This document shows, piece by piece, positions 9,033-52,037 of a stretch of DNA of 64,000 nucleotides. The notes beneath the pieces are model-generated. The model made no database searches. It was not told where the DNA came from and was given only the letters and a program-made list of their open reading frames with translations. The stretch lies in the sequence record OR844650.1; one strand, 5' to 3'. Both the position numbers and the translations under genes were made by a program. The stretch's first letter is position 1. Each line of letters starts with the position of its first letter.

Positions 9033-9629
9033 TCATAAATCACGAACAATATTCATTAAACACAATTTAGGTTTTATAGCATTCAACACCCATATGCATT
9101 CTTTGTAAGTAGCTATTATATCATCTAAATGCTCAGTTACAATGCTTTCTTGAAAATATTCTTCATCATTGAGCTTTGCTAATTTAGTAACATCACACGT
9201 AGGCACTATAGGTCTGGATTGTACACCCATTCCATTATTGATATTAGTGAAATGTACAAAATGGTACTTCACTACACCTTTATCTAGATTTATTATACAT
9301 GACAAATTTTCCAACTCAGTTAGTTTTTTATTACAAGTAACATTAATGAAACCAGCATTATAGGCTCTATAATCATCTACTGATATCTCAAAATCATTAC
9401 GTTCAAATATAAGTGAAATGAGTTGGTCCAGTGGTTTGACATTCATATATTTTAATGAATTTACGTATGATACTTCAATCTTAGATGAAATTATCTTTTT
9501 ACTAAGTGCAGTTAAATCTTTGTTAGATTTAACTGTTAAAACAATAGGTTTAAACCTAGAACTTTTGTTCTTTTTTGATACTTTAAAACGACCTTTACGA
9601 TTCATAATTTCCTCAATTAATAATTTCAC
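9033..9629 (-). CDS. EExxFQxST-motif family protein
   Basis: NDEEYFQESIVTEH. Confidence 0.75.
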   Translation of the reverse strand: MKLLIEEIMNRKGRFKVSKKNKSSRFKPIVLTVKSNKDLTALSKKIISSKIEVSYVNSLKYMNVKPLDQLISLIFERNDFEISVDDYRAYNAGFINVTCNKKLTELENLSCIINLDKGVVKYHFVHFTNINNGMGVQSRPIVPTCDVTKLAKLNDEEYFQESIVTEHLDDIIATYKECIWVLNAIKPKLCLMNIVRDL

Positions 9630-9834
9630 ATTTAACGTGTGGTTTATATAGCATAATTAACCCATTTTTAAGTACAATGATTGTTGCTCTGTTAGTAATC
9701 GAAACGTTTTTAATTATACTTTTTTTATATGTTTCAACATATTTCTCTTCATAATTTATACATTTAACATATTCTTTTTGTTTAGCACTTACAACAGTAC
9801 TGAATAATATCAGTACAAGTACTATATATTTCAT
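9613..9834 (-). CDS. small exported protein
   Basis: Signal peptide MKYIVLVLILFSTVVSA. Confidence 0.7.
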   Translation of the reverse strand: MKYIVLVLILFSTVVSAKQKEYVKCINYEEKYVETYKKSIIKNVSITNRATIIVLKNGLIMLYKPHVKCEIIN

Positions 9835-9851
9835 TACTATACCTTATAAAC

Positions 9852-9876
9852 AAAAAGGAATTCATTTAAGAATTCC
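9852..9876 (-). terminator. intrinsic terminator
   Basis: GGAATTC..GAATTCC followed by T5 on minus strand. Confidence 0.6.
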
Positions 9877-9886
9877 TATTTTACAA

Positions 9887-10180
9887 TCATTTATCTAACA
9901 TACCATTGTGCAAACGTTCATATACTTCAGTTCGACGCAAATTAACAATATCTTCTGCGTATTTTAATGTAAATGCCCATGCTTTTGGATGTACGTTAAG
10001 CTTCATACGAATTCGATTTTTCATCAACTCTCCACTTAAACGAATAAATTCGTGTACACCACGACTACCGTATTCAGTAATTAAATCATTAATGTACATA
10101 TCACGAAGAGTTTCATCTGCACATTCTTTAACCATTTCTACGTCAGCGACGATGCTTTCATTAACTGAAGTACTGATCAT
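9887..10180 (-). CDS. hypothetical protein
   Basis: 97-aa ORF, AAGGT SD. Confidence 0.7.
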   Translation of the reverse strand: MISTSVNESIVADVEMVKECADETLRDMYINDLITEYGSRGVHEFIRLSGELMKNRIRMKLNVHPKAWAFTLKYAEDIVNLRRTEVYERLHNGMLDK

Positions 10181-10192
10181 TTTTAATTTACC

Positions 10193-10459
10193 TTATTTAA
10201 ATTCGACTGTAATTTTATCACCTTCAACTACGAACTTACAGTTGTAGCGACGTGCCATATCCATGTACATATGCTCAGAGTACCAAGGAACATCAATAAT
10301 CGGATGCTCTGCATATTGTAGAACTTCACGGTCGCCCACTGTAGTAATGATGAAAGGAATGTTCATCTCTCGTAAAAACAGTTCAGCACCAGGAGAACGA
10401 TTAATAAATTCAGTATCATTACGTAAAGTAAATCCATTATATTGTAATTTAAGCTTCAT
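10193..10459 (-). CDS. hypothetical protein
   Basis: 88-aa ORF, GAGGA SD. Confidence 0.7.
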   Translation of the reverse strand: MKLKLQYNGFTLRNDTEFINRSPGAELFLREMNIPFIITTVGDREVLQYAEHPIIDVPWYSEHMYMDMARRYNCKFVVEGDKITVEFK

Positions 10460-11501: not shown

Positions 11502-11852
11502 TCAATCCTTATATTTACACAAGCCACCAAAACTAGTTTCTTTAGCACCACGACGCATCATAACTAATTTAGCATATTGTGTGCCATTACTATCTTCATA
11601 TACATCTACTTCAATAAACGCTAAGAAGTTAGGGTCTGTGTCGTTAGAAAACTCAGTGAAGCTAATGTCGCCTACTGTATGCTCTTTAACAAACGTATAT
11701 GATTGTCCATCAATATATACAATATCTCGATCGTCACTATCACCTTGATAGATATGTTTAATATTACCATCTGTACAAACTAAACCTTCCAATGGTTCAG
11801 CATATGACAATCCACACATTAACATACATACAAAAAATAAAATAATTTTCAT
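11502..11852 (-). CDS. exported protein, paralog-like to 12244..12603
   Basis: Signal peptide; LVC...IVYIDGQSYTF. Confidence 0.7.
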   Translation of the reverse strand: MKIILFFVCMLMCGLSYAEPLEGLVCTDGNIKHIYQGDSDDRDIVYIDGQSYTFVKEHTVGDISFTEFSNDTDPNFLAFIEVDVYEDSNGTQYAKLVMMRRGAKETSFGGLCKYKD

Positions 11853-12243: not shown

Positions 12244-12603
12244 CTATATTTCACAGTGTAAGTTCAATTTATCTATATCTAGGTCACGGCGTACCGATGA
12301 GTCCAAGTAAATTACTATATAGATATCACCATTACCAGTTCTTGGGTCTACAATTAATATTACGTTTGCTAATGTACCAGAATCATCTCTATAAGTCGAG
12401 ATTTTTTTATTACCGATAATACTTTCTACTTTAAAACGATAAATCACACCATCAACAACTATATTTTTACCATTTCTAGGGTCGTTAGTCAATACATGCC
12501 ACGTTCCCTTAGTACTACGACAATATGTTTCTGCTGCTGCACAATAACTAAAACATGAAAATAATGCACACACAAGTGCTATTAATTTTATATAACTCTT
12601 CAT
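12244..12603 (-). CDS. exported protein, paralog-like to 11502..11852
   Basis: Signal peptide; TYC...IVVDGVIYRF. Confidence 0.7.
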   Translation of the reverse strand: MKSYIKLIALVCALFSCFSYCAAAETYCRSTKGTWHVLTNDPRNGKNIVVDGVIYRFKVESIIGNKKISTYRDDSGTLANVILIVDPRTGNGDIYIVIYLDSSVRRDLDIDKLNLHCEI

Positions 12604-13993: not shown

Positions 13994-14645
13994 TTATTGT
14001 ATCAAAGATGTATCGATTTGTACAACATTTATTGTAACTATTTCGTACATATAGTCAGGTGCATTGAACTCAGCATACCACTCAATGATCTCACAAGCAG
14101 CATCAACTTGGTTGTTCGCATTAACACGTCTTGCATAGGTACTAGACATTTTATATCTACCATTTACATACACGTTATATACACCATGACACCACCACAT
14201 CTTAGTCATTTATACTAGGCCATACTTTATATTGTAAGTTCTGGTATTGAAATTTACCAATTTCATTTTTCTTACGGAATGATTCATCTACTTGAATTTC
14301 CGCATCGTACTGACCATCAGCCTGTACAACGTACTTAAATTCTTCTACGTGTGAAAAACGTTGACCTTCACCTTCTGGTTTATAGACTTGTACTAAACCT
14401 TCAACTAGATATAAATTCATTTATCATTCCTCATCACTTTCAGTTAGTATAATGCTATGTACAGTTTCCACATAGCGGTGTGTTTTGGGTGTGTTATACT
14501 TTGTAATTTCATCAAACAATTTAAACAGTGCATCCACTTCACTAAGAGCACGAATGAATACATCCATCTTTGTGACAACTCTGGAATAACCTCGTATGTT
14601 ATTAAATTCAGAGACGTGTTCATACACAACATAGTATCTATTCAT
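13994..14645 (-). other. Three small hypothetical CDS (13994..14209, 14202..14420, 14424..14645)
   Basis: Abutting 71-73 aa ORFs; two begin MNxYxV. Confidence 0.65.
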
Positions 14646-15160
14646 ATATTAAAAAGTTCCATGAATTCATTGAATAAAGAAGTTCTAATGCACATAACAA
14701 ATTCAAAATCAACATCTATGGTGTCAAGTAGTTTGAACAACTTTGGTACTAATGGATCATTCACCTCAAAGTTATGAATCAAACTTTGTTGAAACACATT
14801 TTCTTCAGTACTATAATCAATAACAAAATATTCAGCAATACCAGGTGGTGTGTAAACATCATATAAAATATGGCGGTGATGATTTGTTTTAGAACTAGGG
14901 GAATATATAAGTTCTATTTCATAAGATTTATCAGCACTGCGTGCGTAACAAACAATATCAGTACTCGTTATTTCTGAACCATCACTTCTCTCTGAAAAAC
15001 AAACATCAGCATAGCGTTTTCCAGAGAGATTCAAAAGGTCATGAGTTGTTTTACCATAACAGAAATCAGTTTCAATGCGTATCACATCTTGATATTCAAT
15101 TGGTCTTGTATCGCGGCGTTCACGATTAAACACTAATTTCAACAACTCATTAATATCCAT
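14642..15160 (-). CDS. EExxFQxST-motif family protein
   Basis: STEENVFQQSLIHNF. Confidence 0.75.
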   Translation of the reverse strand: MDINELLKLVFNRERRDTRPIEYQDVIRIETDFCYGKTTHDLLNLSGKRYADVCFSERSDGSEITSTDIVCYARSADKSYEIELIYSPSSKTNHHRHILYDVYTPPGIAEYFVIDYSTEENVFQQSLIHNFEVNDPLVPKLFKLLDTIDVDFEFVMCIRTSLFNEFMELFNI

Positions 15161-18822: not shown

Positions 18823-19788
18823 TTAGAAATCTTCGTATTCGTACCCTTTTGCAAGTACTAGCTTCTTAAGCTTTTGCATAGCTTCACTGTACTTTCGGTG
18901 TATTGATGAACGGGATTTAACATATTTTCCATTATCATCAACAAAACCATTATCAGCAATCTCACGAAGCGTTTCAGGTTCATATTCACCTAGACCATGA
19001 ACACGATGGATAATCTCACGTTCTTTAGTACTCAATTCGTTAGTCAGTTCATTGATAGCATAACGTAAAGGTGCACGAATACTATCAACATTGAGGTTAA
19101 AATCAGAAGCAGGTGAATGAATAATGTCACCTAGTGTACCATCGGTAACACCGTCTAATGGTGCATCCAGAGAAGTGTATTCGCTTTGAAATAACAAACA
19201 GTTATTAACATGCTGAATCTCAATCCCAGTACCCTCTGAGATTATTTCAGGAGTTGGGCGAACACCATGTTTACGCATATATTCCTGGCAGAATCTTTTT
19301 ACTTTGATCTTATGAACACTCATATAACGTGGGAAGTGTACCATATAGTTAGCGTCAGAACTTTCGTTATAAACTGTCATGTAAATACTAGAAGAAGCAT
19401 AGGTAATGAACTTAACATTCTTATTAAGATCAAAGGTTTTTAGTGCTCTCATGAACCCCTCAACACCATATGAAATCTTATCTTCAAATGGGATATAACA
19501 AGTACATTTACTTGCTACATCAATAATAAGTCCATAATTGTAACGAACTAACAGTTCAGTGTTTTTCTTTACATTGATACCAGCTTGAATATCACGAATT
19601 AGATCTTCATTGGAAACATTTGGTGGTCGCTTAAGTGTAATATTATATTTGAAACTGCTTTGTACTTTACCTTCATTTTCATCTTTATCTTCAACGAAAT
19701 CTAAGGCTTCTAGTGTGTTGACTTCTTCATTAGCAAAACATTCATCCAGAACTTCTTCGGCAATTGTATTTAAATCAAGCTTTTTCAC
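18823..19788 (-). CDS. RNA polymerase sigma factor, sigma70 family (RpoD/RpoS-like regions 2-4)
   Basis: Region 2 LVRYNYGLII..EDKISYGVEGFMRALKTFD..KFITYA; region 3 RPTPEIIS..TSLDAPL; region 4 LSTKEREII..ETLREIA..SRSSIHRKYSEAMQKL. Confidence 0.9.
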   Translation of the reverse strand: MKKLDLNTIAEEVLDECFANEEVNTLEALDFVEDKDENEGKVQSSFKYNITLKRPPNVSNEDLIRDIQAGINVKKNTELLVRYNYGLIIDVASKCTCYIPFEDKISYGVEGFMRALKTFDLNKNVKFITYASSSIYMTVYNESSDANYMVHFPRYMSVHKIKVKRFCQEYMRKHGVRPTPEIISEGTGIEIQHVNNCLLFQSEYTSLDAPLDGVTDGTLGDIIHSPASDFNLNVDSIRAPLRYAINELTNELSTKEREIIHRVHGLGEYEPETLREIADNGFVDDNGKYVKSRSSIHRKYSEAMQKLKKLVLAKGYEYEDF

Positions 19789-24584: not shown

Positions 24585-25739
24585 ATGTCAAGGTCAATTG
24601 CTGCGGCTGGACGCTATAAGTTTGGTGAATGTGGTTATGTTGTTGATGGTGCAATCCTCAATGATGGAACTAGACTAAAAAATATTAGAATCTATCGCCA
24701 AAGAAGCCATAGATTATATGATTTAGTTGATCCAAGAACTAATATAATATATCGTAAAGTACAAATAACAACTAAAGATAATAAAGGTTATCTATTAAAT
24801 TACAATAAAACTAATGACCAACTATTAAGTGAAATTAATAAAAATTGTTTCTTTGTTCGTGGATATTCTGAAGAGCCACAAGAAACTGATACTGGATTTG
24901 TATATAAATTCATGCTACATAAAACAATTTTAGGTAGTTCACAAACCTTGTATCATATGTATACACCTGAATGTGGTATTATAGATCGTGATATAGATAA
25001 TATTCTCATTTCACCAGTATTTGTTGGTAATGACTCAATTAGTGGTAAATTATTCAACACTGGTTCAGAAATTGATACTAACGGTATGGTAATAACAATC
25101 GTATTACCAGACGGGACAGAATACTTTACTACCCAATTTGTTAATGATGCATTTACAATTCCAGTTGATGTTATCACACAATCAGGGAAAGGTACTGCTA
25201 CGCTCACTTCTCCATATTATAACACTAAAGTGGTGGAATTTGATGTTCTTGAAAGTGGTGAGGATATTGATTTTGTTACATCAGTTCTTCTATCCCAATT
25301 TGAACCTGTTTCGGAAGGTGTATTTTCTGCGGTTGTTCCATTTGATGTTCATGATCGTGGACAGTACTTAGCACTTCAAGCATACAGTGGTGACTTATAT
25401 CAAGTTGGTGTAGATCTTTCTGTAGACGCAGAAGGTAATATTACTGTGTATCAAACTGATAATTTACCTGTTTCTTTGAGTATAATCGGAAAAACACTGC
25501 ATACTACTCCTTTCCATAAAGAATATACTTTAAGTGAGTGGGTTCTCGGTGAAGACTCTATGTACTCTATCTCAGTTCCAGTAACTGAACATGGTAAAGC
25601 ACTACCACAAGTTCAATTATATTCTTCAGACAATCATGTAGTTCATAGTGAAATACAAGTGGATGAAGATGATAATGTAATTCTTAAAGTAGTAGAACCG
25701 CTTGACTGCTCAGTCGTAATAGTTGGTTACAACGCATAA
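24585..25739 (+). CDS. 384-aa beta-rich protein, possibly structural; the only convincing plus-strand gene
   Basis: GGAGGG SD; ATAAATA upstream; two C-terminal repeats (VVPFDVHDRG..VDAEGNITV and VPVTEHGKA..VDEDDNVIL). Confidence 0.7.
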   Translation: MSRSIAAAGRYKFGECGYVVDGAILNDGTRLKNIRIYRQRSHRLYDLVDPRTNIIYRKVQITTKDNKGYLLNYNKTNDQLLSEINKNCFFVRGYSEEPQETDTGFVYKFMLHKTILGSSQTLYHMYTPECGIIDRDIDNILISPVFVGNDSISGKLFNTGSEIDTNGMVITIVLPDGTEYFTTQFVNDAFTIPVDVITQSGKGTATLTSPYYNTKVVEFDVLESGEDIDFVTSVLLSQFEPVSEGVFSAVVPFDVHDRGQYLALQAYSGDLYQVGVDLSVDAEGNITVYQTDNLPVSLSIIGKTLHTTPFHKEYTLSEWVLGEDSMYSISVPVTEHGKALPQVQLYSSDNHVVHSEIQVDEDDNVILKVVEPLDCSVVIVGYNA

Positions 25740-25781: not shown

Positions 25782-26570
25782 TTATTTGAAATTGTCACGT
25801 AGAACTTCTTCAAGTGTTTTATCTGGATTGCTAATGGCTACATTATAAATCAATTCTTTAAATGCAGTTAGTGCCTGCTCAGTTGCTTCTGGACCAAAGT
25901 TCTCACTAATGCTTTTAAACATACTTTGTGCACGTTCTGATTTGATACAACTAGTTACAAACTTGTCAATTTCATTACGAAGCTGCTTAGTTGTCATGTC
26001 ACCAATGAGCATCTCACTAATTTCTTTTGGTTCATCTGCACTTGTTCGGACATTCGTAAAACCAAACACATCATCACCTGAGCCAAAGCTACGTTTTTCT
26101 TTTTTAGTTTCTTTTACTGGTTCTTCTTCAACTTCTTGTTCGTATTCTTTAGTAAAGAGATGAGATAGTACATCATCAAGATTTTTAACCATACCGTCAA
26201 TACGAGATTCAGCATTCTTGGATACATGTTTGAATGCTTGCTCTAGTGCTTTTTCTTGAATCTGGTCACGAACATTATTAACTACATTACGAAGTTTTTC
26301 ATTACAGTTGTCTAAAATTTCTAATACTTCACCAGTTTTGATTTTTTCCAAAAGTACATCTAAATCAGATTTTACATGTTGTTTTTGACTTACTTCACCA
26401 TTAAGAATTGAATTCAATTCTTTAGCACCTTCAACTGCTTCTTCATGTGTTTTAAATTCAACTGGTACGTCAACACCATCCAGTACAATATTAAGCACTT
26501 TACCATCAACGTAGGCGTAGGAGTAAGATGCTTTTTTGAAAGAAATAGTTTTGAAGAAAATGTTGCTCAT
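25782..26570 (-). CDS. hypothetical protein, acidic and helical
   Basis: Long ORF; AAGGAG SD before MSNIF. Confidence 0.75.
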   Translation of the reverse strand: MSNIFFKTISFKKASYSYAYVDGKVLNIVLDGVDVPVEFKTHEEAVEGAKELNSILNGEVSQKQHVKSDLDVLLEKIKTGEVLEILDNCNEKLRNVVNNVRDQIQEKALEQAFKHVSKNAESRIDGMVKNLDDVLSHLFTKEYEQEVEEEPVKETKKEKRSFGSGDDVFGFTNVRTSADEPKEISEMLIGDMTTKQLRNEIDKFVTSCIKSERAQSMFKSISENFGPEATEQALTAFKELIYNVAISNPDKTLEEVLRDNFK

Positions 26571-34581: not shown

Positions 34582-34917
<336 letters not shown>

Positions 34918-34922
34918 TCTTA

Positions 34923-35099: not shown

Positions 35100-35100
35100 T

Positions 35101-35167
35101 TTATGTATCCAGTTCAATTAAGTGTTTCATTTATTCTTCTGTAAAGAAAGCATTGCAATGGACAATG
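35101..35167 (-). pseudogene. Remnant of the 3' end of 34582..34797, with premature stop
   Basis: FFTEE*MKHLIELDT versus FFTKEEMQHLIVLDT. Confidence 0.7.
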
Positions 35168-35177
35168 GAAAAGGTTA

Positions 35178-35357
35178 TTATATTTTTTTGTCTCTAACCG
35201 CAAGCTCATAGATGAACCAACGATTTCCATTCTCATCTAGTACATATGATTCGAACTTATATTTGTCTCGTAAAATATCGAAATGACCATCAATAAATCC
35301 ATTTCCAAACTGGTCATAACGTTTTTTCATCATTGCCATCCATTCTTCATGTGTCAT
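35178..35357 (-). CDS. MTHEEW-family microprotein, 59 aa (not in ORF track)
   Basis: MTHEEWMAMMKKRYDQFGNGFIDGHFDILRD..WFIYELAVRDKKI. Confidence 0.8.
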   Translation of the reverse strand: MTHEEWMAMMKKRYDQFGNGFIDGHFDILRDKYKFESYVLDENGNRWFIYELAVRDKKI

Positions 35358-35539
35358 CTCTTAATATCCATAACGGCTATACTAAAATATGTACCAAAAT
35401 CATCACAATTGATAATGTTGTTATAGTACTCAATTGGGTTACGCAATGATATATACAATTCAAGCTTAAAATAGTATATATCTGCTGCATTTATATTATA
35501 GTGTAGATTAAACCACTCATCAAATGTCTTAGGCTGCAT
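35354..35539 (-). CDS. divergent MTHEEW-like microprotein
   Basis: MQPKTFDEWF...FSIAVMDIKR. Confidence 0.6.
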   Translation of the reverse strand: MQPKTFDEWFNLHYNINAADIYYFKLELYISLRNPIEYYNNIINCDDFGTYFSIAVMDIKR

Positions 35540-35933
35540 TATATTTATCTTTATAAAAATCCATGATTTTAGTCAACAGTACTGCAATCGTATAATCTAA
35601 ATCAGGATAAAGTAAATTGTACTGAAATTCTTCCTCAACACTATAGTTAGTGGTACAGTACTGGTAATCTTTATAACCTATTGAAAAATAATTCGGATAC
35701 AATGTACAACGAAAGCGATAAGCTTCATCTGTCATATAATCATTGTATTCAACACAGAAGTATAGTGATTTTGAATTTAATTCGATAAGCTCCACGAAAC
35801 CATCTGGTAATGAATGATTATAAATGGTATTATCATTATTAAACCATTCATAATATTTTTCTAAAAAATCACTAATAGATACATCAAGACTTTGTATAGG
35901 TGGAGTTATGATAATTTGAACTTCGTTATTCAT
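35529..35933 (-). CDS. EExxFQxST-motif family protein
   Basis: SVEEEFQYNLLYPDL. Confidence 0.7.
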   Translation of the reverse strand: MNNEVQIIITPPIQSLDVSISDFLEKYYEWFNNDNTIYNHSLPDGFVELIELNSKSLYFCVEYNDYMTDEAYRFRCTLYPNYFSIGYKDYQYCTTNYSVEEEFQYNLLYPDLDYTIAVLLTKIMDFYKDKYNAA

Positions 35934-36418
35934 TTTCTCCCCTTATTATATTTTACATATGGGTTATCATAAAGATCATAACTTTTCTGAGCACGTTCTT
36001 TTTTGCGTTCATACATAATTCTATCATACTCCTTCGCTTTCCCATTTGCTTCATTATACAGTTTTAAAATTAGCAAAAATGTATCAAGGTCAGGGTAGTT
36101 TGCTGGATTGATAGTACTTAACATAAATCGTTCTTCTTCAGTTCTAGCAACATCAAACTCATACTTAATAGTTTTATACCCACTCCATTTATATGTGTGT
36201 ATTACTTTGTTAGTAAGTACATTATATTCAACGAAATCAGTACTACCATCAAGTACACGAGTAATCTTAATAGATGTACCAATGACAATCTGTACAGAAC
36301 TCATTTCTGAAGTTTTAAAGTAATAAATGTTATTACGGCGAAGATTAACTTCTCGATCTCCAATGCGAACATGCTTAATAACTTCCATTAATGGTTCTGG
36401 TACACCACGAATTGGCAT
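35930..36418 (-). CDS. EExxFQxST-motif family protein
   Basis: TEEERFMLSTINP. Confidence 0.7.
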   Translation of the reverse strand: MPIRGVPEPLMEVIKHVRIGDREVNLRRNNIYYFKTSEMSSVQIVIGTSIKITRVLDGSTDFVEYNVLTNKVIHTYKWSGYKTIKYEFDVARTEEERFMLSTINPANYPDLDTFLLILKLYNEANGKAKEYDRIMYERKKERAQKSYDLYDNPYVKYNKGRK

Positions 36419-36419
36419 G

Positions 36420-36638
36420 TTAATGCTCCTTTTTAATTCTATACATTTTAACAGCACTGGTTTCCCAAAAGTCACCATCTAAGTTGCTGAATTTATATAT
36501 AGTTTCGAGATTTTCACCATCAAACGAAAACAACACAACATCTTCTTGTACAGTGCCGTTATGTAACATGATATCATAAACTTCATTTCTTACAAATAAT
36601 TCTTTGGCCTTAGAAATATCAAAATCAATAAATTTCAT
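36420..36638 (-). CDS. hypothetical protein
   Basis: ORF, AGGAGGA SD. Confidence 0.7.
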   Translation of the reverse strand: MKFIDFDISKAKELFVRNEVYDIMLHNGTVQEDVVLFSFDGENLETIYKFSNLDGDFWETSAVKMYRIKKEH

Positions 36639-41458: not shown

Positions 41459-41902
41459 TTACTCCTTAAAGTAGATATCACGAATTTGTTTAATCATCTC
41501 TAACTCTTGAAGTCCTATCATACCAAAGTCTTCTTGTATTGTCAACTGCTGAAAGTACATTTCTTCTAAATTATTGTACGGAATCTCAACAAGATTCAAA
41601 GGCTTACTTTCCACACGATAAATTGTATCTTGTACATCATGCTTTTCGATATGAATACTAAATGTATCTTTTTGAATTCTAAATTTATAAAATGTTTGAT
41701 TTGTTGTAAACAAACCAACTTTAGGATGGAATCCCATTTGAATACACAAACAATCTTCATCCTTATATTTCAAGTATATAGCTTTTGACGTTGCTAGTAC
41801 TTTAGATTTTGGGAAATAAAAATCACCCATCAACTTCTGTCGTTTCCAATCCTCGTATACAACTGGATGCTTAACCTTCTTCAATTGGTGCAGTACTGTC
41901 AT
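41459..41902 (-). CDS. EExxFQxST-motif family protein
   Basis: NLEEMYFQQLTIQEDFG. Confidence 0.75.
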   Translation of the reverse strand: MTVLHQLKKVKHPVVYEDWKRQKLMGDFYFPKSKVLATSKAIYLKYKDEDCLCIQMGFHPKVGLFTTNQTFYKFRIQKDTFSIHIEKHDVQDTIYRVESKPLNLVEIPYNNLEEMYFQQLTIQEDFGMIGLQELEMIKQIRDIYFKE

Positions 41903-42282
41903 AGTTTTTTCCAGTCCAATGAATCGAAATCGATTTGCTCAGGATTATCAACAGCGACAACTCGTGCATTATGAAGAGTTTCAAAGTAGCCGTTCCACGG
42001 TGTACGTACTGGGATTTTTTCATCTCCAATTTTTACAAAGAAAGAGAATTCACATGACATTGGATCAAACCATTCTTTATGTTTGGCTTCATCGATTATT
42101 GTAGCACGTTCGTTACTATATGCATCATCGAGTTTCTTAAAGAATACCCAATGCTCTTTCAAAGACTGTAATGCTACAACTGCCTCATCCTTTGATTCCC
42201 ATTGAACATCCAATGTATTGGTAACTGAATCTTCAGTTTCAGTGTCCCCTGTAGTGTAATGTACTTCAATGCAGTATTTCAT
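41899..42282 (-). CDS. hypothetical protein
   Basis: 127-aa ORF. Confidence 0.7.
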   Translation of the reverse strand: MKYCIEVHYTTGDTETEDSVTNTLDVQWESKDEAVVALQSLKEHWVFFKKLDDAYSNERATIIDEAKHKEWFDPMSCEFSFFVKIGDEKIPVRTPWNGYFETLHNARVVAVDNPEQIDFDSLDWKKL

Positions 42283-42734
42283 TATTCATCACCTTTTAGT
42301 AATTTACAAATTTCAATCATATGATAATAACATGTATTCCAAAATTGTCCATTAGTACTCCCAACATCATGCACAGTACTTAGCTGGAACACATATTCAT
42401 CGTTAAACATATTTTTCATATCTTCAACGTAACATTCTTTTTTAGAATCATAGTTATATTCTATACTCATTTCTCCATCTGGGTCAAGTGATATTGATGA
42501 TATGTCTTGAACGAAGGCGGGGTTTGTTGGAGAAAAGTATAACGTAAGTTGATAGCAGTCTGGGTCAGTTTCATAACAATACACAATATTATAATTCCCA
42601 CCCGTGGTTGGGCTGTATTTAAATTCTGTTTTATTAGTATTTGACATGCTATACCCAAGGTTCTTTATCTCTTGGAGATGTAATAATATTTTATGTAAAG
42701 TTCCTAAAACATGAATCAAATTATCAATTTTCAT
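42282..42734 (-). CDS. EExxFQxST-motif family protein
   Basis: NDEYVFQLSTVHDVG. Confidence 0.75.
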   Translation of the reverse strand: MKIDNLIHVLGTLHKILLHLQEIKNLGYSMSNTNKTEFKYSPTTGGNYNIVYCYETDPDCYQLTLYFSPTNPAFVQDISSISLDPDGEMSIEYNYDSKKECYVEDMKNMFNDEYVFQLSTVHDVGSTNGQFWNTCYYHMIEICKLLKGDE

Positions 42735-43246
42735 TTACGTTCCTTTAAAAAGTTCAGTTTAAAAGTTTTACCAAATTCCATTGTAGCTTTACCCAGATTA
42801 TTAATATTTTCTTTCAACATTTCTTGCATCTTCCTAATACTTTCATTCCAGGCTTCTTCTTCTTTGCGGAGGACTGGTCGCAATCGTTCCTGAATATCGT
42901 TAAAACGTGTATTGAGTTCAACCAATGATTCATATGTGAAATCTTTCATATCGATGATAGTACTACGTTGAAAGAATTCTTCTTCAGACAAATTACTTAA
43001 AATGATTTTATCACGACCAATAGATAATGTCAATTCATCATCTTTATTTTTTTTAATTACAATACTAACAGGTGTTTTTAATGTAATGCAAATATCATGA
43101 TTATTAAATGTTTCAGTTTGGTTTGACATTCTGAATTGAAGTTTCCCAGATAAAGCATGTACTGGTGATGGTTTCTTTTTACCAGTAATAACATCTTCCC
43201 ATGAATCGAGAATATTATTAATAATTTTAACATAAGGAATTGGCAT
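42731..43246 (-). CDS. EExxFQxST-motif family protein
   Basis: SEEEFFQRSTIIDMKDFTYE. Confidence 0.75.
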   Translation of the reverse strand: MPIPYVKIINNILDSWEDVITGKKKPSPVHALSGKLQFRMSNQTETFNNHDICITLKTPVSIVIKKNKDDELTLSIGRDKIILSNLSEEEFFQRSTIIDMKDFTYESLVELNTRFNDIQERLRPVLRKEEEAWNESIRKMQEMLKENINNLGKATMEFGKTFKLNFLKERK

Positions 43247-43288
43247 ATATGCACCTATGAAAAATCCACGCAATGCGTGGATTTGTAA

Positions 43289-43819
43289 TTATTCAAGTAT
43301 AGTAATTTCAATTAAACGAATTTCGATAAACTCGTTTTCAGTTTCCCATGACGTGCCAAATTTCTTTTCAAGTTCAGATTTCACATCACTTTTAAATTTT
43401 CCCATAGTATTAGGAATAATTTGTTTGGTTAATTTGTCGTAACCACAATAAAACATAGGTTTCTCCCTTCGAGATATTAGCTGAACAAAATCTTTTGGAT
43501 ATGCAGGTATGTTATGCATCACTTCATGAATACACTCAGTACTTGAATCTTGTACTTTGTACATTACATTAAGTTTACCTCTGAAATTTGCGGTCATATC
43601 AACAATAGTTCCTTTACCCGATTTAAGTAAAGTTCCATTCTTTGAATGAGAGCAATAAAATACCTCATCACCAATATTAGGATAATACAAATTAAATTCT
43701 AATTCAGATTTTACAGCCAGCCGTTTGAAACTTTCTGTACGTTTTATATAAGTTTGGTATTTGTTTATGTTCAAAAGAATATCTCTCTTAGTAAATGTGA
43801 TATAACTGGCATAGTCCAT
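43289..43819 (-). CDS. hypothetical protein
   Basis: 176-aa ORF. Confidence 0.65.
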   Translation of the reverse strand: MDYASYITFTKRDILLNINKYQTYIKRTESFKRLAVKSELEFNLYYPNIGDEVFYCSHSKNGTLLKSGKGTIVDMTANFRGKLNVMYKVQDSSTECIHEVMHNIPAYPKDFVQLISRREKPMFYCGYDKLTKQIIPNTMGKFKSDVKSELEKKFGTSWETENEFIEIRLIEITILE

Positions 43820-44631
43820 CCATTCCCAAGCATTTTGTATGCTTGTGTCTTACTAGACACTTTAAAGAAATCTTCAGGAACACCCTGTAATTTACAACAT
43901 TCTACTACACTTAAGTGTCTATAGTCAATATTTCTTTTGCCATTCTCTAATAGATATTGACGACTGATCACTGGGTCACGAAACACCAATTGTCGTCTGG
44001 ATTTATTAAAGTACTGGTTACAATCACCACCTTTAAAATAGTTAGCATCTATACAGTACGAAGCGGTTCTGTCAGTGTACCAACCATCTTCAATAATATC
44101 TTGAAGTTTAGGTGCATTGGATAATGCAGGTGGTATAAAAAGCTTATCAGTACTGTACCAGTAATATCTCTGCCTGAAGTGAGGCGTATAATGCTGGGAG
44201 TTTATCAGTACTGGCGTGATTCCTAAAATACTATTAATGTATTCTTTGAAATCTTCCTTCATTTTAACATTTTCAAACAGAAATTTCAAGTTAGGATTGA
44301 GACTTTTGATATGATCAAAAATTTCAACCATTACTAAAAATAACTGCCCACGTATATCATTTAAACCACCCTGTTTACCTGCAACTGACCAGGCTTGGCA
44401 TGGGAAACCACCCATTAATAAATCTATTTTGTCCCACTCAATATCCCATTCTCTCCACTTAGTTACATCACCCAATTGGATAATATCAGGAAAGTTAGAT
44501 TGAGATTCAGCTATTGCGTACTTATCAATTTCGGATGAATAATATTTTTCAACTGGGATACCCGCATCTTGCAATGCCATATATCCCACACTCATTCCAT
44601 TAAAAAGAGAAAGTACTCGGATAGGTTTCAT
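43771..44631 (-). CDS. DNA (cytosine-5)-methyltransferase, orphan
   Basis: Motif I VLSLFNGM, motif IV GGFPCQ, motif VI FENV, motif VIII RQRYYW, motifs IX-X LSVVECCKLQG..YKMLGNGW. Confidence 0.92.
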   Translation of the reverse strand: MKPIRVLSLFNGMSVGYMALQDAGIPVEKYYSSEIDKYAIAESQSNFPDIIQLGDVTKWREWDIEWDKIDLLMGGFPCQAWSVAGKQGGLNDIRGQLFLVMVEIFDHIKSLNPNLKFLFENVKMKEDFKEYINSILGITPVLINSQHYTPHFRQRYYWYSTDKLFIPPALSNAPKLQDIIEDGWYTDRTASYCIDANYFKGGDCNQYFNKSRRQLVFRDPVISRQYLLENGKRNIDYRHLSVVECCKLQGVPEDFFKVSSKTQAYKMLGNGWTMPVISHLLREIFF

Positions 44632-45288: not shown

Positions 45289-45729
45289 TTAATTGAACTC
45301 TACTTCTGGATAATGATTATAGAACATCTCACGAACTGCGTCAAGATGTTCTTGAAATTGTTTTATATCTTCTAATGATGGTGCATCAATAACAGTACTA
45401 AGTTGAAACAACGATTCTTCTGTGTTATATAGTGACATATCAAATGAATTATTGTTGTCATCAGTTATGATATTATCACAAATTTCGTAAGTGTCAATAC
45501 AAACATCATCAAGTGTTGTATTATCATATACAGTGTATACGAATACAAAAATAAAAGAAGAATGTTCTTTACCATAACGCGGTGGGTCATATGTCACATA
45601 GCATTTGTGATCAAATGTATCGAGTTCCATAGACACCACCCCAGCTTCACGATATTCATTAGTTTCACTGGTAAGATCCGGTATTGATGTTATCGAAAGT
45701 AAGTGGAGAAATTTACTTGGATTTAGCAT
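45289..45729 (-). CDS. EExxFQxST-motif family protein
   Basis: TEESLFQLSTVIDAPSLE. Confidence 0.75.
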   Translation of the reverse strand: MLNPSKFLHLLSITSIPDLTSETNEYREAGVVSMELDTFDHKCYVTYDPPRYGKEHSSFIFVFVYTVYDNTTLDDVCIDTYEICDNIITDDNNNSFDMSLYNTEESLFQLSTVIDAPSLEDIKQFQEHLDAVREMFYNHYPEVEFN

Positions 45730-46178
45730 TTCACCACCATTGGATTTTGCGACTGTATATTAAAAAGGGATAATACAAAAGTACTCAATTTTTCGAAACA
45801 ATCTACTAATACATTTAACTCATCATAACTAACACCAATTTCACGAATAAGCGATTGTTGAAAGAATCCTTCTTCGGTTAACGTTAAACTACTAACCTCA
45901 GTTATGTTATAATAACTTTGGGATGTTGTGGTTGATATTAGTTGTATTGAAATCGTATCTGATGTTGTGTTGTACAGATATAAATATTTTGTTTTTCTTT
46001 CCAATGGATCTATACATGAAAGATCGATCATGTCATAGGTTTTTCCAATAAAAATATTACAATCATCTGACAATTCACAACAAATGCGTATATGTTCTTT
46101 CGGGTCATGAACACGTTGTGTGTCAAATTCACATGACATTGCAATTTCAAAATGATTTTTTATTTCGTCAACATTCAT
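45723..46178 (-). CDS. EExxFQxST-motif family protein
   Basis: TEEGFFQQSLIREIGVSYDE. Confidence 0.75.
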   Translation of the reverse strand: MNVDEIKNHFEIAMSCEFDTQRVHDPKEHIRICCELSDDCNIFIGKTYDMIDLSCIDPLERKTKYLYLYNTTSDTISIQLISTTTSQSYYNITEVSSLTLTEEGFFQQSLIREIGVSYDELNVLVDCFEKLSTFVLSLFNIQSQNPMVVKC

Positions 46179-46552
46179 CTGCACCCACCATTAATTCTTA
46201 TATTTGTATAGTTTAATGCTTTTTTAATAATACCAATTTCTGTAATTCCTATTACATTTTTCTCAATCAATGACAATTGGAATAGTTCCTCTTCGGAAAT
46301 ATCAATACTGTGGATTCTTGTACAATAATCGTTGAAGTCATATACATATCGTATTGTATAGTCGTTTATAGAAACTGATACAATTGCAATCCCATCATGG
46401 ATGTAAGTTAGTTCATTTGAGTATCTATTAAAAATTAACCTATCTGGTGAACCTATTGGTAGTTGAAATGTATTTCTAGTATCTTGAACAATAACAAAAT
46501 CATCATCTATATTTCTACTCAGAACACCCAAAATATCATATATAGTAGTCAT
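46175..46552 (-). CDS. EExxFQxST-motif family protein
   Basis: SEEELFQLSLIEKNVIG. Confidence 0.75.
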   Translation of the reverse strand: MTTIYDILGVLSRNIDDDFVIVQDTRNTFQLPIGSPDRLIFNRYSNELTYIHDGIAIVSVSINDYTIRYVYDFNDYCTRIHSIDISEEELFQLSLIEKNVIGITEIGIIKKALNYTNIRINGGCR

Positions 46553-46553: not shown

Positions 46554-46958
46554 TTATTCTTTACCTTCAGCAGTTCTGATAATTTTCATAACTTCTCTGG
46601 ATAGTGCGTATATTTTTTTATAGTACTCAAATGTAACTGAACCAAAATCATTAATAGTACTAGCCATGAAGAACGATTCTTCTGTATATAGTTCATTTGA
46701 CAAAGCAACCAGTTCTTGGTGAAATTTTGCGTTCTTCCAATAACGAAATTCAAAAACAAATTGTCCGTCATGACCGACTCTACAACATTCAGAACGATCA
46801 CTGTCTACACAGCTAAACACAATATCCCTTTCAGAGTCGTACCAGATATTTCCAATATTTGTTTCAATAACAGCATAATCAATTTTTTTAGAATTTGGAA
46901 TTAAACCTTTTTTCACCAGCACTAAACTGGTATTATCAATATCTAGTAAACTTACCAT
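46554..46958 (-). CDS. EExxFQxST-motif family protein
   Basis: TEESFFMASTINDFGSVTFE. Confidence 0.75.
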   Translation of the reverse strand: MVSLLDIDNTSLVLVKKGLIPNSKKIDYAVIETNIGNIWYDSERDIVFSCVDSDRSECCRVGHDGQFVFEFRYWKNAKFHQELVALSNELYTEESFFMASTINDFGSVTFEYYKKIYALSREVMKIIRTAEGKE

Positions 46959-46959: not shown

Positions 46960-47370
46960 TCAATTCCCCATTACTAAAGTGTTTTTAATCTCCAACAATT
47001 CACTATACATATTCTTCAATTGTAATATATCTTCAAAAGTAATACCACCAAGATCATCAACTAATGAACGTTGGAATAAAGATTCACTTGTTTGTAATGT
47101 ATCTAAATCGGTGATTTTTAATAAAGAACTTGGATTAAGTGTTTCGACTAGTAGTATGTTTTTGTATGGTACATATGTGATCTTGATGTTCTTTTTATAA
47201 TTAATCTTATAAAATCGCATAATTGACGATTCATCACTTAGTTGGATAATTGGGTCGTCTTGATCATTAGACCACCATACAGTACTAGTCATATGATTGA
47301 CGTGGTGGTTCAATTCTGATATGTCCAAATCTAAAAAATATTTTAGTTCATTGTGTAAATCTAAACTCAT
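46960..47370 (-). CDS. EExxFQxST-motif family protein
   Basis: TSESLFQRSLVDDLGGITFE. Confidence 0.75.
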   Translation of the reverse strand: MSLDLHNELKYFLDLDISELNHHVNHMTSTVWWSNDQDDPIIQLSDESSIMRFYKINYKKNIKITYVPYKNILLVETLNPSSLLKITDLDTLQTSESLFQRSLVDDLGGITFEDILQLKNMYSELLEIKNTLVMGN

Positions 47371-47425: not shown

Positions 47426-47821
47426 TCAAGATGTGAAATAATTATACCAGTAATATAGTTCTTTTAATTCTTCAGTACTGAACAATACTTCTTCTATTGT
47501 AGATTGTTGAAAGTGATATTCATCATTTAGATACATAGAAATATTACTATATACTTTCCTATTGTATTGACATAAAAAAGAAGTTTTTTGATTAATGTAT
47601 TCAGTAAATGTTAATTTATCTAACTCAATATCGAATGATAATTTAATAATATGACTATTATCATTTACATACATTAGTTTCTTTGAAAAATGATCAATTG
47701 TAATATATTCTTTATGAGAGAACTGAAATATATTATTAAATTTATTACCATTTGTGCTTCTAAATTTTTCAAGGTAATAAGAAAGTGGTTTAATTATTGA
47801 AGTTCCAATATTGTTCTTCAT
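47426..47821 (-). CDS. EExxFQxST-motif family protein
   Basis: NDEYHFQQSTIEEVLFSTEE. Confidence 0.75.
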   Translation of the reverse strand: MKNNIGTSIIKPLSYYLEKFRSTNGNKFNNIFQFSHKEYITIDHFSKKLMYVNDNSHIIKLSFDIELDKLTFTEYINQKTSFLCQYNRKVYSNISMYLNDEYHFQQSTIEEVLFSTEELKELYYWYNYFTS

Positions 47822-48586: not shown

Positions 48587-49015
48587 TTAGAGAGATTCTT
48601 CGTATTCAGCAACAATCTCAACCATTTCATTAATGAACTTGATGTGAGAATGTGTCACTGTACGGAAGTCGTAAACAAGTGACTGTTGGAAAAATACATC
48701 TTCATCAAGAGAACCATCAAAGTTCAAATCAATGTTTTCATCGTCATTGCTTGGTGCAACTTTAATATTCAGAAGATTTTCATCAACTGCAAGTTTTACA
48801 ACACAACCCAGTGCAATGGCAAGAACATATGCTGGTTTCTTAGCTTTTTCATTACGGAATGGTGCACGTAGAGCACAAAAAGTACTGCTAATCTCATCAT
48901 TTGGTTCTTTGTATTTAACATTGACCATTAGTTCTTCGATTTTGACGCTCTCAATAACACGACCAGTTTCTGGAGCGAAGAAAGAATGTTCACGGATAGT
49001 TTGTTCGATATTCAT
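48587..49015 (-). CDS. EExxFQxST-motif family protein
   Basis: DEDVFFQQSLVYDFRTVT. Confidence 0.75.
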   Translation of the reverse strand: MNIEQTIREHSFFAPETGRVIESVKIEELMVNVKYKEPNDEISSTFCALRAPFRNEKAKKPAYVLAIALGCVVKLAVDENLLNIKVAPSNDDENIDLNFDGSLDEDVFFQQSLVYDFRTVTHSHIKFINEMVEIVAEYEESL

Positions 49016-49018
49016 ATA

Positions 49019-50613
49019 TTATTCCTTATTTAGATTGCTAAAAATACGAAGATTGCGGTTTGCTTTAAACTGTTTCAAATCACCAAATCTATCATCAACG
49101 ATGAAAGTTGCTGATTTCTTTGACTGACATATTGTACAAATCAACATACCTTGTATTGTATACTCAGTTGAGCAATTTGTACAGTACTTTTTTTCATAAA
49201 GTTCAGTACTCATAAAACCTTCACATCAGTACGTTTTTCTCTTTGTTCTTTTTTAACCTCATCAGTTCTAGTATCTTCTAATTGTAACACAACTTCTTTT
49301 AGAATGTCAACATCAATTGTTGCTTCTACATATTGATAGTCGTTTACACCAAAAACATACTTTACTGCAACCCATACACGGTTATACCATTTTAAAAAAG
49401 GATTTAAACGCATACTTATCAGACATTGACCAAGTTTATCATCTCCATATTCCTCTGTCAAGTCAAATTGTGCAATGTGAACGCAATGCTCCATTTTATC
49501 GCCACAAGAACAACGTAAAATATACTCTTTACTATCTTCACTCATACTGGATAAGCCTTTAAAAATTGTTTAAGAACTCCAAACTTAGATGAATCGTAAT
49601 CGTATTGATAGTTAAGCTCTCGCTTATCATTCATACGATACACCATATGAAAATTTGGATAACCAATTCTAACAGGTTTTTTAGGATTAGCAAGTAAAAT
49701 TGCCCATTCTTTTACTGGAAATACGTTTTCAGTCAGCATTTTGATATTTGTTTCAAAATACTTCATGGCTTGCTTTCCGTGTTTGTAATCTTCTTCACTA
49801 ATCTCTTGACAATCAATTCTATGTGTTTCGGTATCTAACACCCATTGTTGATCTTCGGTATATAAATCAATTACATCATCAATAGTATAACTATCAGGTA
49901 AATCATAAAATACCCAATGAGATAAACCAGAACTTACACCAATTCGAATTTTAAAGAACTTCATTCTTTATCACCTTTTACATAATTATAACACACGACA
50001 CAGTGAATTACAAGAAGAATTATTTCCACAATGTTAAGAGACAATACATGACTCTGCGGTGTGAAAAGTGCCAATAACAACATTATAGCAGGTATTGTGA
50101 ATATTTTCCAAGTTTTTTTCATTTTATTCCTTTGTATATGCATATGGTAAAAATAAAACCTCTGCATTAGGAATGCATTGTGCCAATCCTTCAACAATAG
50201 ATTTGTTTTTATTACATTGCCAAACTTTAGTAATTTTATGTCTAAATACTTTTTTATCAACGACAATCCAGTACATGTCCATTTTAACAGTACTGTTATC
50301 AGATGGTGTTAGTAAAGTATCGATGTCATATGTATCAAAGATTTTGTCGTTCATATAATCTCCTAATAAAATATTCTCGATTCTCTCTTATATACCCAGA
50401 TACACAGTTAGTTGTGGCTTGGTTAGTGAATGAAATCTCACTATTGGACACGCCATTTGCATCACACAAAGGACATATTCCCATGTACTTGGGGGTCGGG
50501 TAGGTGTCCAATTTGTATTTTTCATTACACACCATGTACTGCTGTGGCAATACATCTAATATTATTTCATATTCTTCATCAAACACCTTGAAGCATACCC
50601 AACATTTACCCAT
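49019..50613 (-). other. Run of small hypothetical CDS (49019..49213 CxxC zinc-finger-like, 49210..49545, 49542..49964, 49961..50122 membrane, 50124..50354, 50335..50613)
   Basis: Abutting ORFs; CTNC..CTIC in the first. Confidence 0.65.
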
Positions 50614-51097
50614 TATAGTTTTCCTTTAACACCGTTCTTATATATTCGAATGTTTTAACAAACCAATCATGTTCGTCGGATACATCTACAACTTTACCAC
50701 CATATACATAGTAATGGTAAAAAGGTAACTTGCTTTTTCTTAATCTTTCGGCTAACTCTGGATTTTGAATTATCTTAGCACAAATAGCATCTTGAATAAT
50801 AGAAATACAATCATCCGTCATTTCAATTCGATCATGCATATATTTGTTAGCGGCTGCTTTTGCTGCTGCACCAGATACTTTTCTAAGGTCATCATGTTTT
50901 TGCCCAGTTAAAAACCAAAAGTAAAATGTTTCAACTGAAGGGAACCAACCATATGGTTCAAGTGTGAAGCTATGTGAAGAAAAGTTAGATAGATCTCTAC
51001 CTAACTTAGTTCTAGCTTTACTATAAATGTTAATGTGTCGGTATCCATCATCAGTAGGGTCAATAAAGTCAAATGACTCTTCTGGGAACTCAAACAT
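50606..51097 (-). CDS. NADAR-family protein, T4 gp30.3-like
   Basis: INIYSKARTKLGRDLSNF..GWFPSVETFYFWFLTG..AICAKIIQNPELAERL. Confidence 0.65.
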   Translation of the reverse strand: MFEFPEESFDFIDPTDDGYRHINIYSKARTKLGRDLSNFSSHSFTLEPYGWFPSVETFYFWFLTGQKHDDLRKVSGAAAKAAANKYMHDRIEMTDDCISIIQDAICAKIIQNPELAERLRKSKLPFYHYYVYGGKVVDVSDEHDWFVKTFEYIRTVLKENYNG

Positions 51098-51099
51098 AA

Positions 51100-51453
51100 T
51101 TATTCTTCTTCTCCTGAAGGAGTTCCACGTAGTTTGTCAAAATCAACCCAAATACCATGCTGATTTTTAAATCTACATTTCTCATAGTACCAGCTATAGT
51201 CAGTTTCAACACCTTGTGATATAGATCTAACACTACAATCATACATATTATATAAATGATCCCTGACAATATACGTATTAATCAGAATAACAAACAATAC
51301 AATAATACCACAGACTTTAGGATGATCCATAATCAAATCTAGAACGGAACTCGTTTCAGTACTGTCAATTTTACTACGACCGATGGCAACAGCTTTCAGT
51401 ACTGCTAATGATACCAGTAATGAAATAACAAGAACACTCAAATAAATTAGCAT
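51100..51453 (-). CDS. membrane protein, 2 TM
   Basis: Two hydrophobic segments. Confidence 0.7.
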   Translation of the reverse strand: MLIYLSVLVISLLVSLAVLKAVAIGRSKIDSTETSSVLDLIMDHPKVCGIIVLFVILINTYIVRDHLYNMYDCSVRSISQGVETDYSWYYEKCRFKNQHGIWVDFDKLRGTPSGEEE

Positions 51454-51455
51454 AA

Positions 51456-52037
51456 TTAGACTCCTACACCAAAACGTAAAAGGATGTTATTAACAAACAC
51501 AAAATCAAATGGAGACTTTGGTTCAGATACCGAGTACTGAAAAGTTTCAGCGGAGAAACTTTCCCTATTGTGCCATGTTGATGAATCGATTAGTAATTGT
51601 TTATCACCAATTGACGTTGAATGTAATGGAACGTGTGCTGATGAATTTATGGAATACGCATTTAGTTTTCCTTGTTCATCTAATGTGATACTAAGATAAT
51701 ATTTTTTCTCAATATCAGGAATAAGTTCTTTTGTATACGAATAGATTGAATCAACCCATTCATCATGTACATTTTCTGCACCAATCAGGTGTCCGAATGA
51801 TAAATTACGTTTAACTGGCTTTGATCCTGGTCGAGTTAGAATGAATTGTTTTGTTAAGTAAAAATTATTATGTTTTACTTCAATATTAACATTTTTAAAA
51901 TTCACAACTTTATCATATACATTTCGAAAAACTGTTATATCCCAAGTACTAATTTCATCCATAATACTTATCACCAGTTCTTCTAGTTCTTGGATAAATG
52001 GCAAATCATCCTGATGAAATCTAGTCATGGTTTTCAT
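51456..52037 (-). CDS. hypothetical protein, weak EExxFQxST-like tail
   Basis: SAETFQYSVSEP. Confidence 0.65.
   Translation of the reverse strand: MKTMTRFHQDDLPFIQELEELVISIMDEISTWDITVFRNVYDKVVNFKNVNIEVKHNNFYLTKQFILTRPGSKPVKRNLSFGHLIGAENVHDEWVDSIYSYTKELIPDIEKKYYLSITLDEQGKLNAYSINSSAHVPLHSTSIGDKQLLIDSSTWHNRESFSAETFQYSVSEPKSPFDFVFVNNILLRFGVGV

Follow-up and report, generated by a model that had tools for sequence, protein, structure and literature searches.

The window analysed here, bases 1-64000 of the 351,992-bp genome of Escherichia phage ECO103 4-12-1 (OR844650), carries many copies of a small protein whose relatives share a conserved motif close to the C-terminus. The host of the phage is E. 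coli, and the window was 96-99% identical to PBECO4, 121Q, phAPEC6, G17, and other members of Asteriusvirus, a genus of RaK2-like jumbo myoviruses. Its G+C content was 28-38% per 2-kb interval, with a mean of ~33%, and nearly all of its genes were located on the minus strand. An earlier note on this DNA had listed 23 open reading frames (ORFs) as carriers of the motif and had described them as a variable part attached to a constant one. Our results confirmed this description at the sequence level, with a ~40-aa C-terminal module joined to an N-terminal part that could not be aligned between members.

Members and motif of the family

A loose regular expression for the motif matched 18 minus-strand ORFs of the window and no plus-strand ORF. 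Pairwise comparison with phmmer alone linked 9 of the 23 listed ORFs, and an iterated hidden Markov model (HMM) took in 18 of them after one round and then converged. Each of these 18 was recovered by an HMM from which it had been left out, with expectation (E) values of 1e-4 to 3e-11, and the best non-member had an E value of 0.007 or worse. As to the other listed carriers, the ORF at 9033 is a probable member and those at 32540 and 35529 are possible ones, while the family profile gave no support to the membership of 36687 (E = 1.5) or 51456 (E = 220).

The family genes of the window, all on the minus strand, formed tandem arrays in the arrangement described earlier. The probable member at 9033-9629 (198 aa) contained the motif, with 40 aa from the F to the C-terminus, and gave E values of 0.0035 and 0.0019 when left out. 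The motif was also seen in the 172-aa member at 14642-15160 (leave-one-out E = 4.4e-5, the same measure being given for the members below). Three contiguous genes followed at 28309-28764 (151 aa, 4.5e-7), 28712-29140 (142 aa, 1.2e-9), and 29130-29558 (142 aa, 7.3e-7), the last of which had L in place of the invariant F. The member at 30269-30634 (121 aa, 3.4e-11) had the adjacent gene as its nearest paralogue, with 32% identity, and the member at 30627-31052 (141 aa, 2.3e-7) provided the protein of structural model 1. Between 32 and 37 kb, two members, at 33000-33353 (117 aa, 1.5e-8) and 35930-36478 (182 aa, 1e-4, with an extra C-terminal tail), were found together with the two possible degenerate members. 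One of these, at 32540-32923 (127 aa; E = 0.0012 and 0.033), had Arg for the conserved Ser, and in the other, at 35529-35933 (134 aa; E = 8.9 and 0.073), the distance from the acidic pair to the F-Q pair was one residue shorter. Further members were located at 41459-41902 (147 aa, 1.4e-6), 42282-42734 (150 aa, 1.2e-5; the protein of model 2), and 42731-43273 (180 aa, 2.8e-8), the last with a long charged C-terminal tail. Six consecutive members were located at 45289-45729 (146 aa, 4.2e-9), 45723-46184 (153 aa, 1.5e-10), 46175-46552 (125 aa, 3.5e-5), 46554-46958 (134 aa, 8.1e-11), 46960-47370 (136 aa, 1.3e-9), and 47426-47821 (131 aa, 1.7e-5 with filters off, default filters losing this ORF in the 7-fold test described below). 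The second of the six was 49% identical to its orthologue in Ecwhy_1, a ~82% identical phage, and the fourth had a ~30% identical homologue in the RaK2/K64-1 phages. The member at 48587-49015 (142 aa, 6.8e-7) completed the set.

The remainder of the OR844650 genome was taken as six pieces, each of which was scanned separately with the family profile. The profile converged on 63 members in the genome, all 63 of them on the minus strand, and none of the decoys, shuffled or reversed, scored against it. Over the whole genome, the loose motif expression matched 50 of 964 minus-strand ORFs against 0 of 849 plus-strand ORFs. A 7-fold test with members held out recovered 56 of the 63 at E < 1e-3 and 61 at E < 1e-2; three ORFs adjoining the arrays scored just under membership and may be further members. 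Since phAPEC6, a close relative, has 551 ORFs (PMC7247149), 63 members correspond to ~11% of the genes, or about one in nine. The window, with 19 member sites, carries about one third of the family, and the remaining sites were at ~199 kb (two), ~212 kb (one), ~252 kb (one), and in a second array of ~40 members. This second array, outside the window at 266,957-294,906 (~28 kb), was nearly contiguous, contained many longer members (150-207 aa), and included genes that had been duplicated recently, among them five in succession at 281,546-283,870.

With the motif columns numbered from the invariant F as position 0 and counted over the 63 members, position -5 was occupied by T (22/63) or S (16/63) and was followed by E at -4 (47/63) and E at -3 (48/63). 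F was present at position 0 in 61/63 members, Q at +1 in 60/63, and S at +3 in 51/63, with L (28/63) or T (26/63) at +4, V (31/63) or I (24/63) at +5, and D (28/63), N (10/63), or E (9/63) at +7. Positions -2 and +2 were the most variable in the motif. The member proteins were ~105-230 aa long, with an N-terminal part of ~60 to 150 aa and extra tails in some of them, and the motif sat 28-98 aa from the C-terminus. In the window, the distance from the F to the end was 28-50 aa, or 65 aa in 35930 and 80 aa in 42731, which agreed with the earlier placement of the motif near the C-terminus.

The 63 members were acidic, with a median isoelectric point (pI) of 4.8 and a median net charge of -9; the pI was below 5.5 in 51/63 members, compared with 51% of similar-sized ORFs. 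A transmembrane-like segment was present in 2/63.

Evolution, distribution and genomic setting

Both codon families were used for the motif Ser (AGT 24, TCA 12, AGC 6, TCG 4, TCT 3), and the motif Thr was encoded by ACT (15) or ACA (8). As the genome-wide shares of AGT and ACT were 0.34 and 0.45, the frequent AGT ACT at the Ser-Thr, which had been pointed out before, was nothing special and reflected ordinary codon bias of the genome. The F codons were TTT (36) and TTC (24), and the Q codons CAG (33) and CAA (26). CAG thus accounted for 33/59 of the codons of the +1 Gln, against 26% among all Gln codons of the genome. Because synonymous codons vary at the motif positions, conservation acts on the protein and not on the DNA. 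The ratio of non-synonymous to synonymous differences (pN/pS) of the family was 0.29 in comparisons with one close and one distant relative, which implied that these are real genes under purifying selection.

Most paralogue pairs were 25-35% identical over short stretches, and a few recent duplicates reached 58% and 43%. In 9/63 cases, against ~2 expected, the neighbouring member was the best paralogue, and in 20/63 the best paralogue lay within three members; many junctions between members overlapped. On these sequence relationships, the family appears to have grown by tandem duplication. In the part compared with Ecwhy_1 (17-63 kb), a reciprocal orthologue was found for 16 of 17 members, and the expansion is therefore old. 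The member at 28712-29140 had no reciprocal orthologue in Ecwhy_1 and no annotated coding sequence at the matching site of phAPEC6, so that the content of the arrays varies between asteriusviruses. The idea that the family diversifies was supported, since its orthologues diverged faster than neighbouring genes: identity to Ecwhy_1 had a median of 73% for the family and 89% for the neighbours (Mann-Whitney p = 3e-4), and in two comparisons the pN/pS of the neighbours was 0.15, lower than that of the family. Identity within the orthologue pairs was 85% for the 13 motif residues, compared with 68% for the N-terminal part and 76% for the tail.

The profile of the 18 window members was searched against 1.84 billion representative proteins, of which 146 clusters, formed at 50% identity, reached an E value of 1e-3 or lower. 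The 140 clusters examined had a median length of 140 aa (most ~115-170 aa), and the motif lay 34-59 aa from the C-terminus in 80% of them; in their representatives, the conserved columns contained E in 96-97%, F in 99%, Q in 89%, and S in 96%. The named sources of the clusters were asteriusviruses or "E. coli" assemblies with ~350-kb contigs. The Klebsiella phages RaK2, K64-1, and Muenster had one homologue that was ~30% identical over the full length, and RaK2 carried 10 members in one 40-kb stretch. A 39-nt degenerate DNA pattern, back-translated from the motif and covering only part of the family, matched 12 IMG/VR loci. The contigs bearing these loci were all 345-378 kb long, and 1-8 profile-positive ORFs lay near each locus. 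With the same partial coverage, the pattern revealed no family member in one genome per species of 185,579 bacterial and archaeal species; the single match there was rejected as an Arg-rich spurious ORF in a contig of 53% G+C. In a 53-kb metagenomic contig (Logan SRR26954460 contig 1203), 33 of 36 consecutive same-strand genes at positions 188-20256 were members of 165-225 aa. A tblastn search of the phage collection with one metagenomic member gave no match. A second protein search, word-based and started from 76 representatives, brought in no more than close relatives. Within the scope searched, the family was restricted to one phage lineage, the RaK2-like jumbo phages.

The virion data used here were published for the close relative phAPEC6 and not for the OR844650 isolate. 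The phAPEC6 orthologues of the family (gp054c, 083c-088c, 093c, 103c, 120c-121c, 127c-134c, and 404c-466c) included none of the 62 virion proteins identified by mass spectrometry (Table 1, PMC7247149). This disfavoured the earlier suggestion of a packaging or injection apparatus as the common partner, and a role of the members as virion cargo was rejected on the same ground. The region's only long plus-strand gene (24585-25739) and its neighbour on the minus strand (25782-26594) lie within this otherwise non-virion block; mass spectrometry had identified the orthologues of both in phAPEC6, gp077 and gp078c, as virion proteins.

Matches to the sigma-70 consensus at 11 or more of its 12 positions numbered 33 on the coding strand of the window and 2 on the other strand, with 2.7 expected per strand, and several were directly upstream of family genes or arrays. 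Perfect 12/12 matches were located at 31462, 38581, 39128, and 40988. The region of the second array likewise had 20 matches against 3 on the other strand. In PA5oct, a RaK2-like phage that depends on the host polymerase, an early block consists mostly of uncharacterised genes (PMC7318152). Together with the promoter matches, this analogy suggests that the family is transcribed early by the host RNA polymerase. A 321-aa ORF at 18823-19788 on the minus strand, surrounded by small early-type genes, has a phAPEC6 orthologue annotated as an RpoD-type sigma-70 factor.

Several other genes were observed in the window. A C-5 cytosine DNA methyltransferase gene (43771-44631, minus strand) is located between two family arrays, and its flanking by family genes is a synteny conserved in RaK2 and K64-1. 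A second, smaller paralogue family occupies 33423-35357 on the minus strand and consists of six ORFs of 54-66 aa (starting at 33423, 33584, 33745, 34398, 34923, and 35178), which have seven identical N-terminal residues and matched each other in phmmer with E = 1e-4 to 1e-26; three of the six are exact 165-bp tandem neighbours. At 3147-4182 on the minus strand, three paralogues of 112-122 aa stand in tandem; they contain several hydrophobic segments and are probably small membrane proteins. Two minus-strand ORFs of 116 aa (11502-11852) and 119 aa (12244-12603) are also paralogous and have a hydrophobic, signal-peptide-like N-terminus.

Domain structure and interpretation

When held-out HMMs were built from the C-terminal parts only (35-87 aa), every member was recovered, with E = 8e-4 to 1e-12, and when they were built from the N-terminal parts only, no member was recovered (E = 0.3-26). 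Comparison of N-terminal orthologue-group profiles with hhalign gave a median probability of 0.2, and 1 of 171 pairs exceeded 50; this profile-profile test is a weak negative, given its shallow alignments and a set of only 3 qualifying controls. Both tests agreed with the earlier remark that the N-terminal parts are barely alignable.

AlphaFold2 models were obtained for the proteins of 30627-31052 (model 1, with 48 aligned sequences) and 42282-42734 (model 2), which are 15-21% identical to each other. Model 1 had a predicted local distance difference test score (pLDDT) of 87 and a predicted template modelling score (pTM) of 0.80, and consisted of a helix at residues 5-15, seven strands, and helices at 95-98, 101-110 (the motif), and 118-128. 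Its confidence peaked at 93-96 over residues 91-130. Model 2 (pLDDT 73, pTM 0.69) showed the same order of elements: a long N-terminal helix precedes six strands, after which come a short helix, the motif helix at 112-119, and a final helix. The helix that had been predicted to follow the motif was thus present in both models, and the 10-residue blocks bearing the motif had mean pLDDT values of 95-96 (model 1) and 90-91 (model 2). Both models placed the motif helix inside one compact domain, which spoke against the motif being a free tag. In a Foldseek search of predicted viral structures, model 1 matched uncharacterised proteins of asteriusviruses, RaK2, GAP32, and CBB over 121-149 columns, with template modelling (TM) scores of 0.51-0.62 and 11-21% identity. 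These matches between predicted structures support the view that several paralogue types share one fold along their entire length. Among the solved structures of the PDB, no significant match to model 1 was found (best E = 0.12).

On a helical wheel, the two variable motif positions fell on one narrow stripe, and the remaining circumference was conserved, with hydrophobic and polar residues interleaved. Since only two positions vary, most of the circumference of the helix is under constraint, which is the pattern expected of a helix packed at the centre of a fold. From the conservation pattern and the pTM, we infer that the motif forms a central and largely packed helix in a three-helix layer on the sheet. 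Its T/S-acidic-acidic opening looks like a helix cap, and so does the T/S-x-acidic start of the following helix. Among the findings that the earlier note had named as speaking against its proposal was one ordinary fold with the motif as a buried core helix and no common partner. The compact domain and the constrained circumference come close to this.

The interpretation that we consider most probable, with a probability of roughly 45%, is that the proteins are an old lineage-specific family of RaK2-like jumbo phages, consisting of small, soluble, mostly acidic, non-virion, and probably early compact-domain binding proteins for host takeover or counter-defence. Each protein would be one compact alpha+beta domain, in which an N-terminal helix is followed by 6-7 strands forming an antiparallel sheet and then by a helix-loop-helix at the C-terminus. 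The motif would form the first C-terminal helix, with a start resembling a capping box, and hold the fold together, and its invariant polar residues probably also contribute to a functional site common to the members. The divergent sheet and N-terminal helix would provide the specificity surface, via which each paralogue could bind a different target of host takeover or counter-defence. By analogy with other viral multigene families, such a role is likely.

Several observations weigh against this interpretation. The fold is known from predictions only, and the burial of the motif helix was deduced rather than seen. Model 2, which is of moderate confidence, gave only weak matches in BFVD (TM 0.2-0.4, some of them to the entries matched by model 1), so that the shared fold is without reciprocal confirmation. 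As homology of the N-terminal parts is not demonstrable by sequence, some members may have other N-terminal folds. One protein, P0137 (115 aa, from a 1-kb ENA contig), combines the C-terminal module with a short N-terminal part, whose residues 9-33 match PF21220, RecQ-1-like_HTH, with 46.6 bits. It was the only one of the 76 representatives with any Pfam match; its N-terminal fold probably differs from that of the family, and it provides a single hint that the module can be joined to a different N-terminal part. No homologue of known function was found in Pfam, PHROGs, PDB, PADLOC, or NCBIfam. In addition, E, E, Q, and S are conserved at above 90%, which exceeds the usual conservation of a purely structural helix and also fits a model with a common hub. 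The conservation among the database hits is partly circular because the information of the profile lies in the motif.

In such a hub model, which we regard as possible but doubtful, the ~40-aa C-terminal module would be portable and dock all paralogues to a single partner of the host or the phage (for example RNA polymerase, a protease, or the ribosome), while the N-terminal part would select different targets. All detectable sequence similarity is indeed confined to the module, the polar residues are near-invariant across more than 200 proteins, and the N-terminal parts differ in length, from ~60 to 150 aa, with extra tails in some proteins. The combination of the module with a PF21220-matching part in P0137 and the presence of the phage sigma factor gene (18823-19788) within the same early region are also consistent with docking to a hub. 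In the two models, however, the motif helix lies within a compact domain, variation in the motif is limited to two positions, and the structural matches of model 1 extend over the full length between paralogue types. P0137, moreover, is a single sequence on a 1-kb contig, no F-box or PRANC profile matched, and the partner is hypothetical. A further reading, in which ~60 paralogous specificity domains present the same invariant helix to one hub, a machine of the host or the phage (RNA polymerase, a protease, or the ribosome, for instance), as a combinatorial adaptor system, appears slightly more doubtful than the hub model itself. If it were true, one machine would be redirected to, or shielded from, dozens of different targets, and the family, with a fold that has no solved relative, would be the counterpart in phages of the F-box principle.

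The near-invariance of the motif could also arise from oligomerisation. The helix-loop-helix would then mediate homo- or mixed oligomers, for example acidic ring-like assemblies, and the motif would stay compatible across copies because the interface is shared, with the remainder of each protein free to drift; a constraint acting on ~60 co-expressed paralogues together would explain the conservation. The order of elements and the acidity recall the oligomeric p32/gC1qBP, which was among the weak PDB matches, but these matches were not significant (E of 0.38 or worse, TM 0.17-0.34) and no profile of the p32/gC1qBP family matched, and we consider this explanation improbable. Much less probable still is recognition of the motif as a site by a modifying enzyme, for example a glutamine-specific protease. 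The near-invariant string of acidic residues, an aromatic residue, F, and Q, with a small residue two positions on, resembles the recognition site of the potyviral NIa proteases. Directly after Q, however, the residue varies and is in most cases large, with L in 14, E in 12, Q in 11, and Y in 11 of the 63 members (together 48/63), on which ground this reading was rejected. The segment is also predicted to be helical with a block pLDDT of 90-96, its hydrophobic periodicity continues through the motif, and the family is not found in virions, where phage maturation proteases act. An element at the level of the DNA, chance, or an annotation artefact, as would result from a nucleotide repeat or spurious ORFs, has a practically negligible probability, and the earlier remark on AGT ACT was the one point in its favour. 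Synonymous codons vary at every motif position, including both Ser families, the pN/pS was 0.29, no plus-strand, shuffled, or reversed sequence matched, and orthologues are kept in Ecwhy_1, phAPEC6, and RaK2; the codon variation, the pN/pS, and the decoys without matches led us to reject a DNA-level repeat and chance.

For the preferred interpretation of compact-domain binding proteins, the invariant helix offers a clear entry to structural and expression work on a probable, large repertoire for takeover or counter-defence. Uniting PHROGs groups of unknown function also improves annotation across the phage clade.

Comparison with known systems

Searches of Pfam, NCBIfam, and PADLOC with the 18 window members, and of Pfam with the 76 representatives, gave no family-wide match, and the family profiles found nothing below E = 0.27 among PDB sequences. 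In PHROGs, the members were spread over at least ten groups of unknown function, with weak cross-matches between the groups. The family and its motif were not described in the genome papers of these phages, in a broad jumbo-phage review, or in the literature retrieved by searches with the motif string; the sole related remark was that of the RaK2 genome paper, in which ~10% of the RaK2 proteins are paralogues. The statement of the earlier note that no function had been described thus held for the profile libraries, PDB, PADLOC, and the literature.

The members are acidic, as are DNA mimics of the Ocr/ArdA type, but no match to these was found in Pfam, in PDB by fold or sequence, or in PADLOC. 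The internal proteins of T4-type phages are likewise variable proteins with one short constant region in one phage. The T4 capsid-targeting tag is N-terminal, is cleaved, and delivers proteins into the head. In the present family, the motif is C-terminal and predicted to be helical, and the orthologues were not in the phAPEC6 virion. The proteins p32/gC1qBP/MAM33 have the same order of elements, with an N-terminal helix, 7 antiparallel strands, and C-terminal helices, and are acidic too. Given the scores of the structural matches and the lack of a sequence-profile match in Pfam or among PDB sequences, this likeness of the predicted fold is a lead and not a relationship.

The likeness to F-box and PRANC adaptors, which the earlier note had raised for the F-box, is conceptual, as these also combine a constant short helical region with variable regions in many paralogues. 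No F-box or PRANC profile of Pfam matched any of the 18 window members or the 76 representatives, so that the comparison is an analogy only. Bacteria are not known to have an SCF ligase. In the models, the motif helix is packed in a compact domain, although the N-terminal parts could not be aligned and that of P0137 is different, and the hub is hypothetical. The ankyrin/PRANC proteins of poxviruses and the multigene families of asfarviruses are tandem non-structural paralogues that have a short conserved region and a divergent remainder and evolve faster than core genes. The present family resembles them in its many paralogues, same-strand tandem arrays, lineage restriction, and fast divergence, and differs from them in its bacterial host, in the lack of a sequence or profile relation, and in a conserved part that is predicted to be integral to the domain.

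The zinc ribbon of the Bacillus phage G, with ~35 copies, is likewise a small domain amplified to dozens in one jumbo phage, and its function is unknown or guessed (PMC7824862). The jumbo-phage survey that described it called this 35-copy expansion "unprecedented" and does not mention the present family (Iyer et al. 2021; PMC7824862). The two are unrelated in fold and sequence, and with ~60 copies per genome the present family has nearly twice the copy number of the zinc ribbon. Long arrays occur also in related Klebsiella phages and uncultured phages, and in contrast to the expansion in phage G, the family spans a clade that includes Asteriusvirus, RaK2/K64-1, and relatives of GAP32 and CBB.

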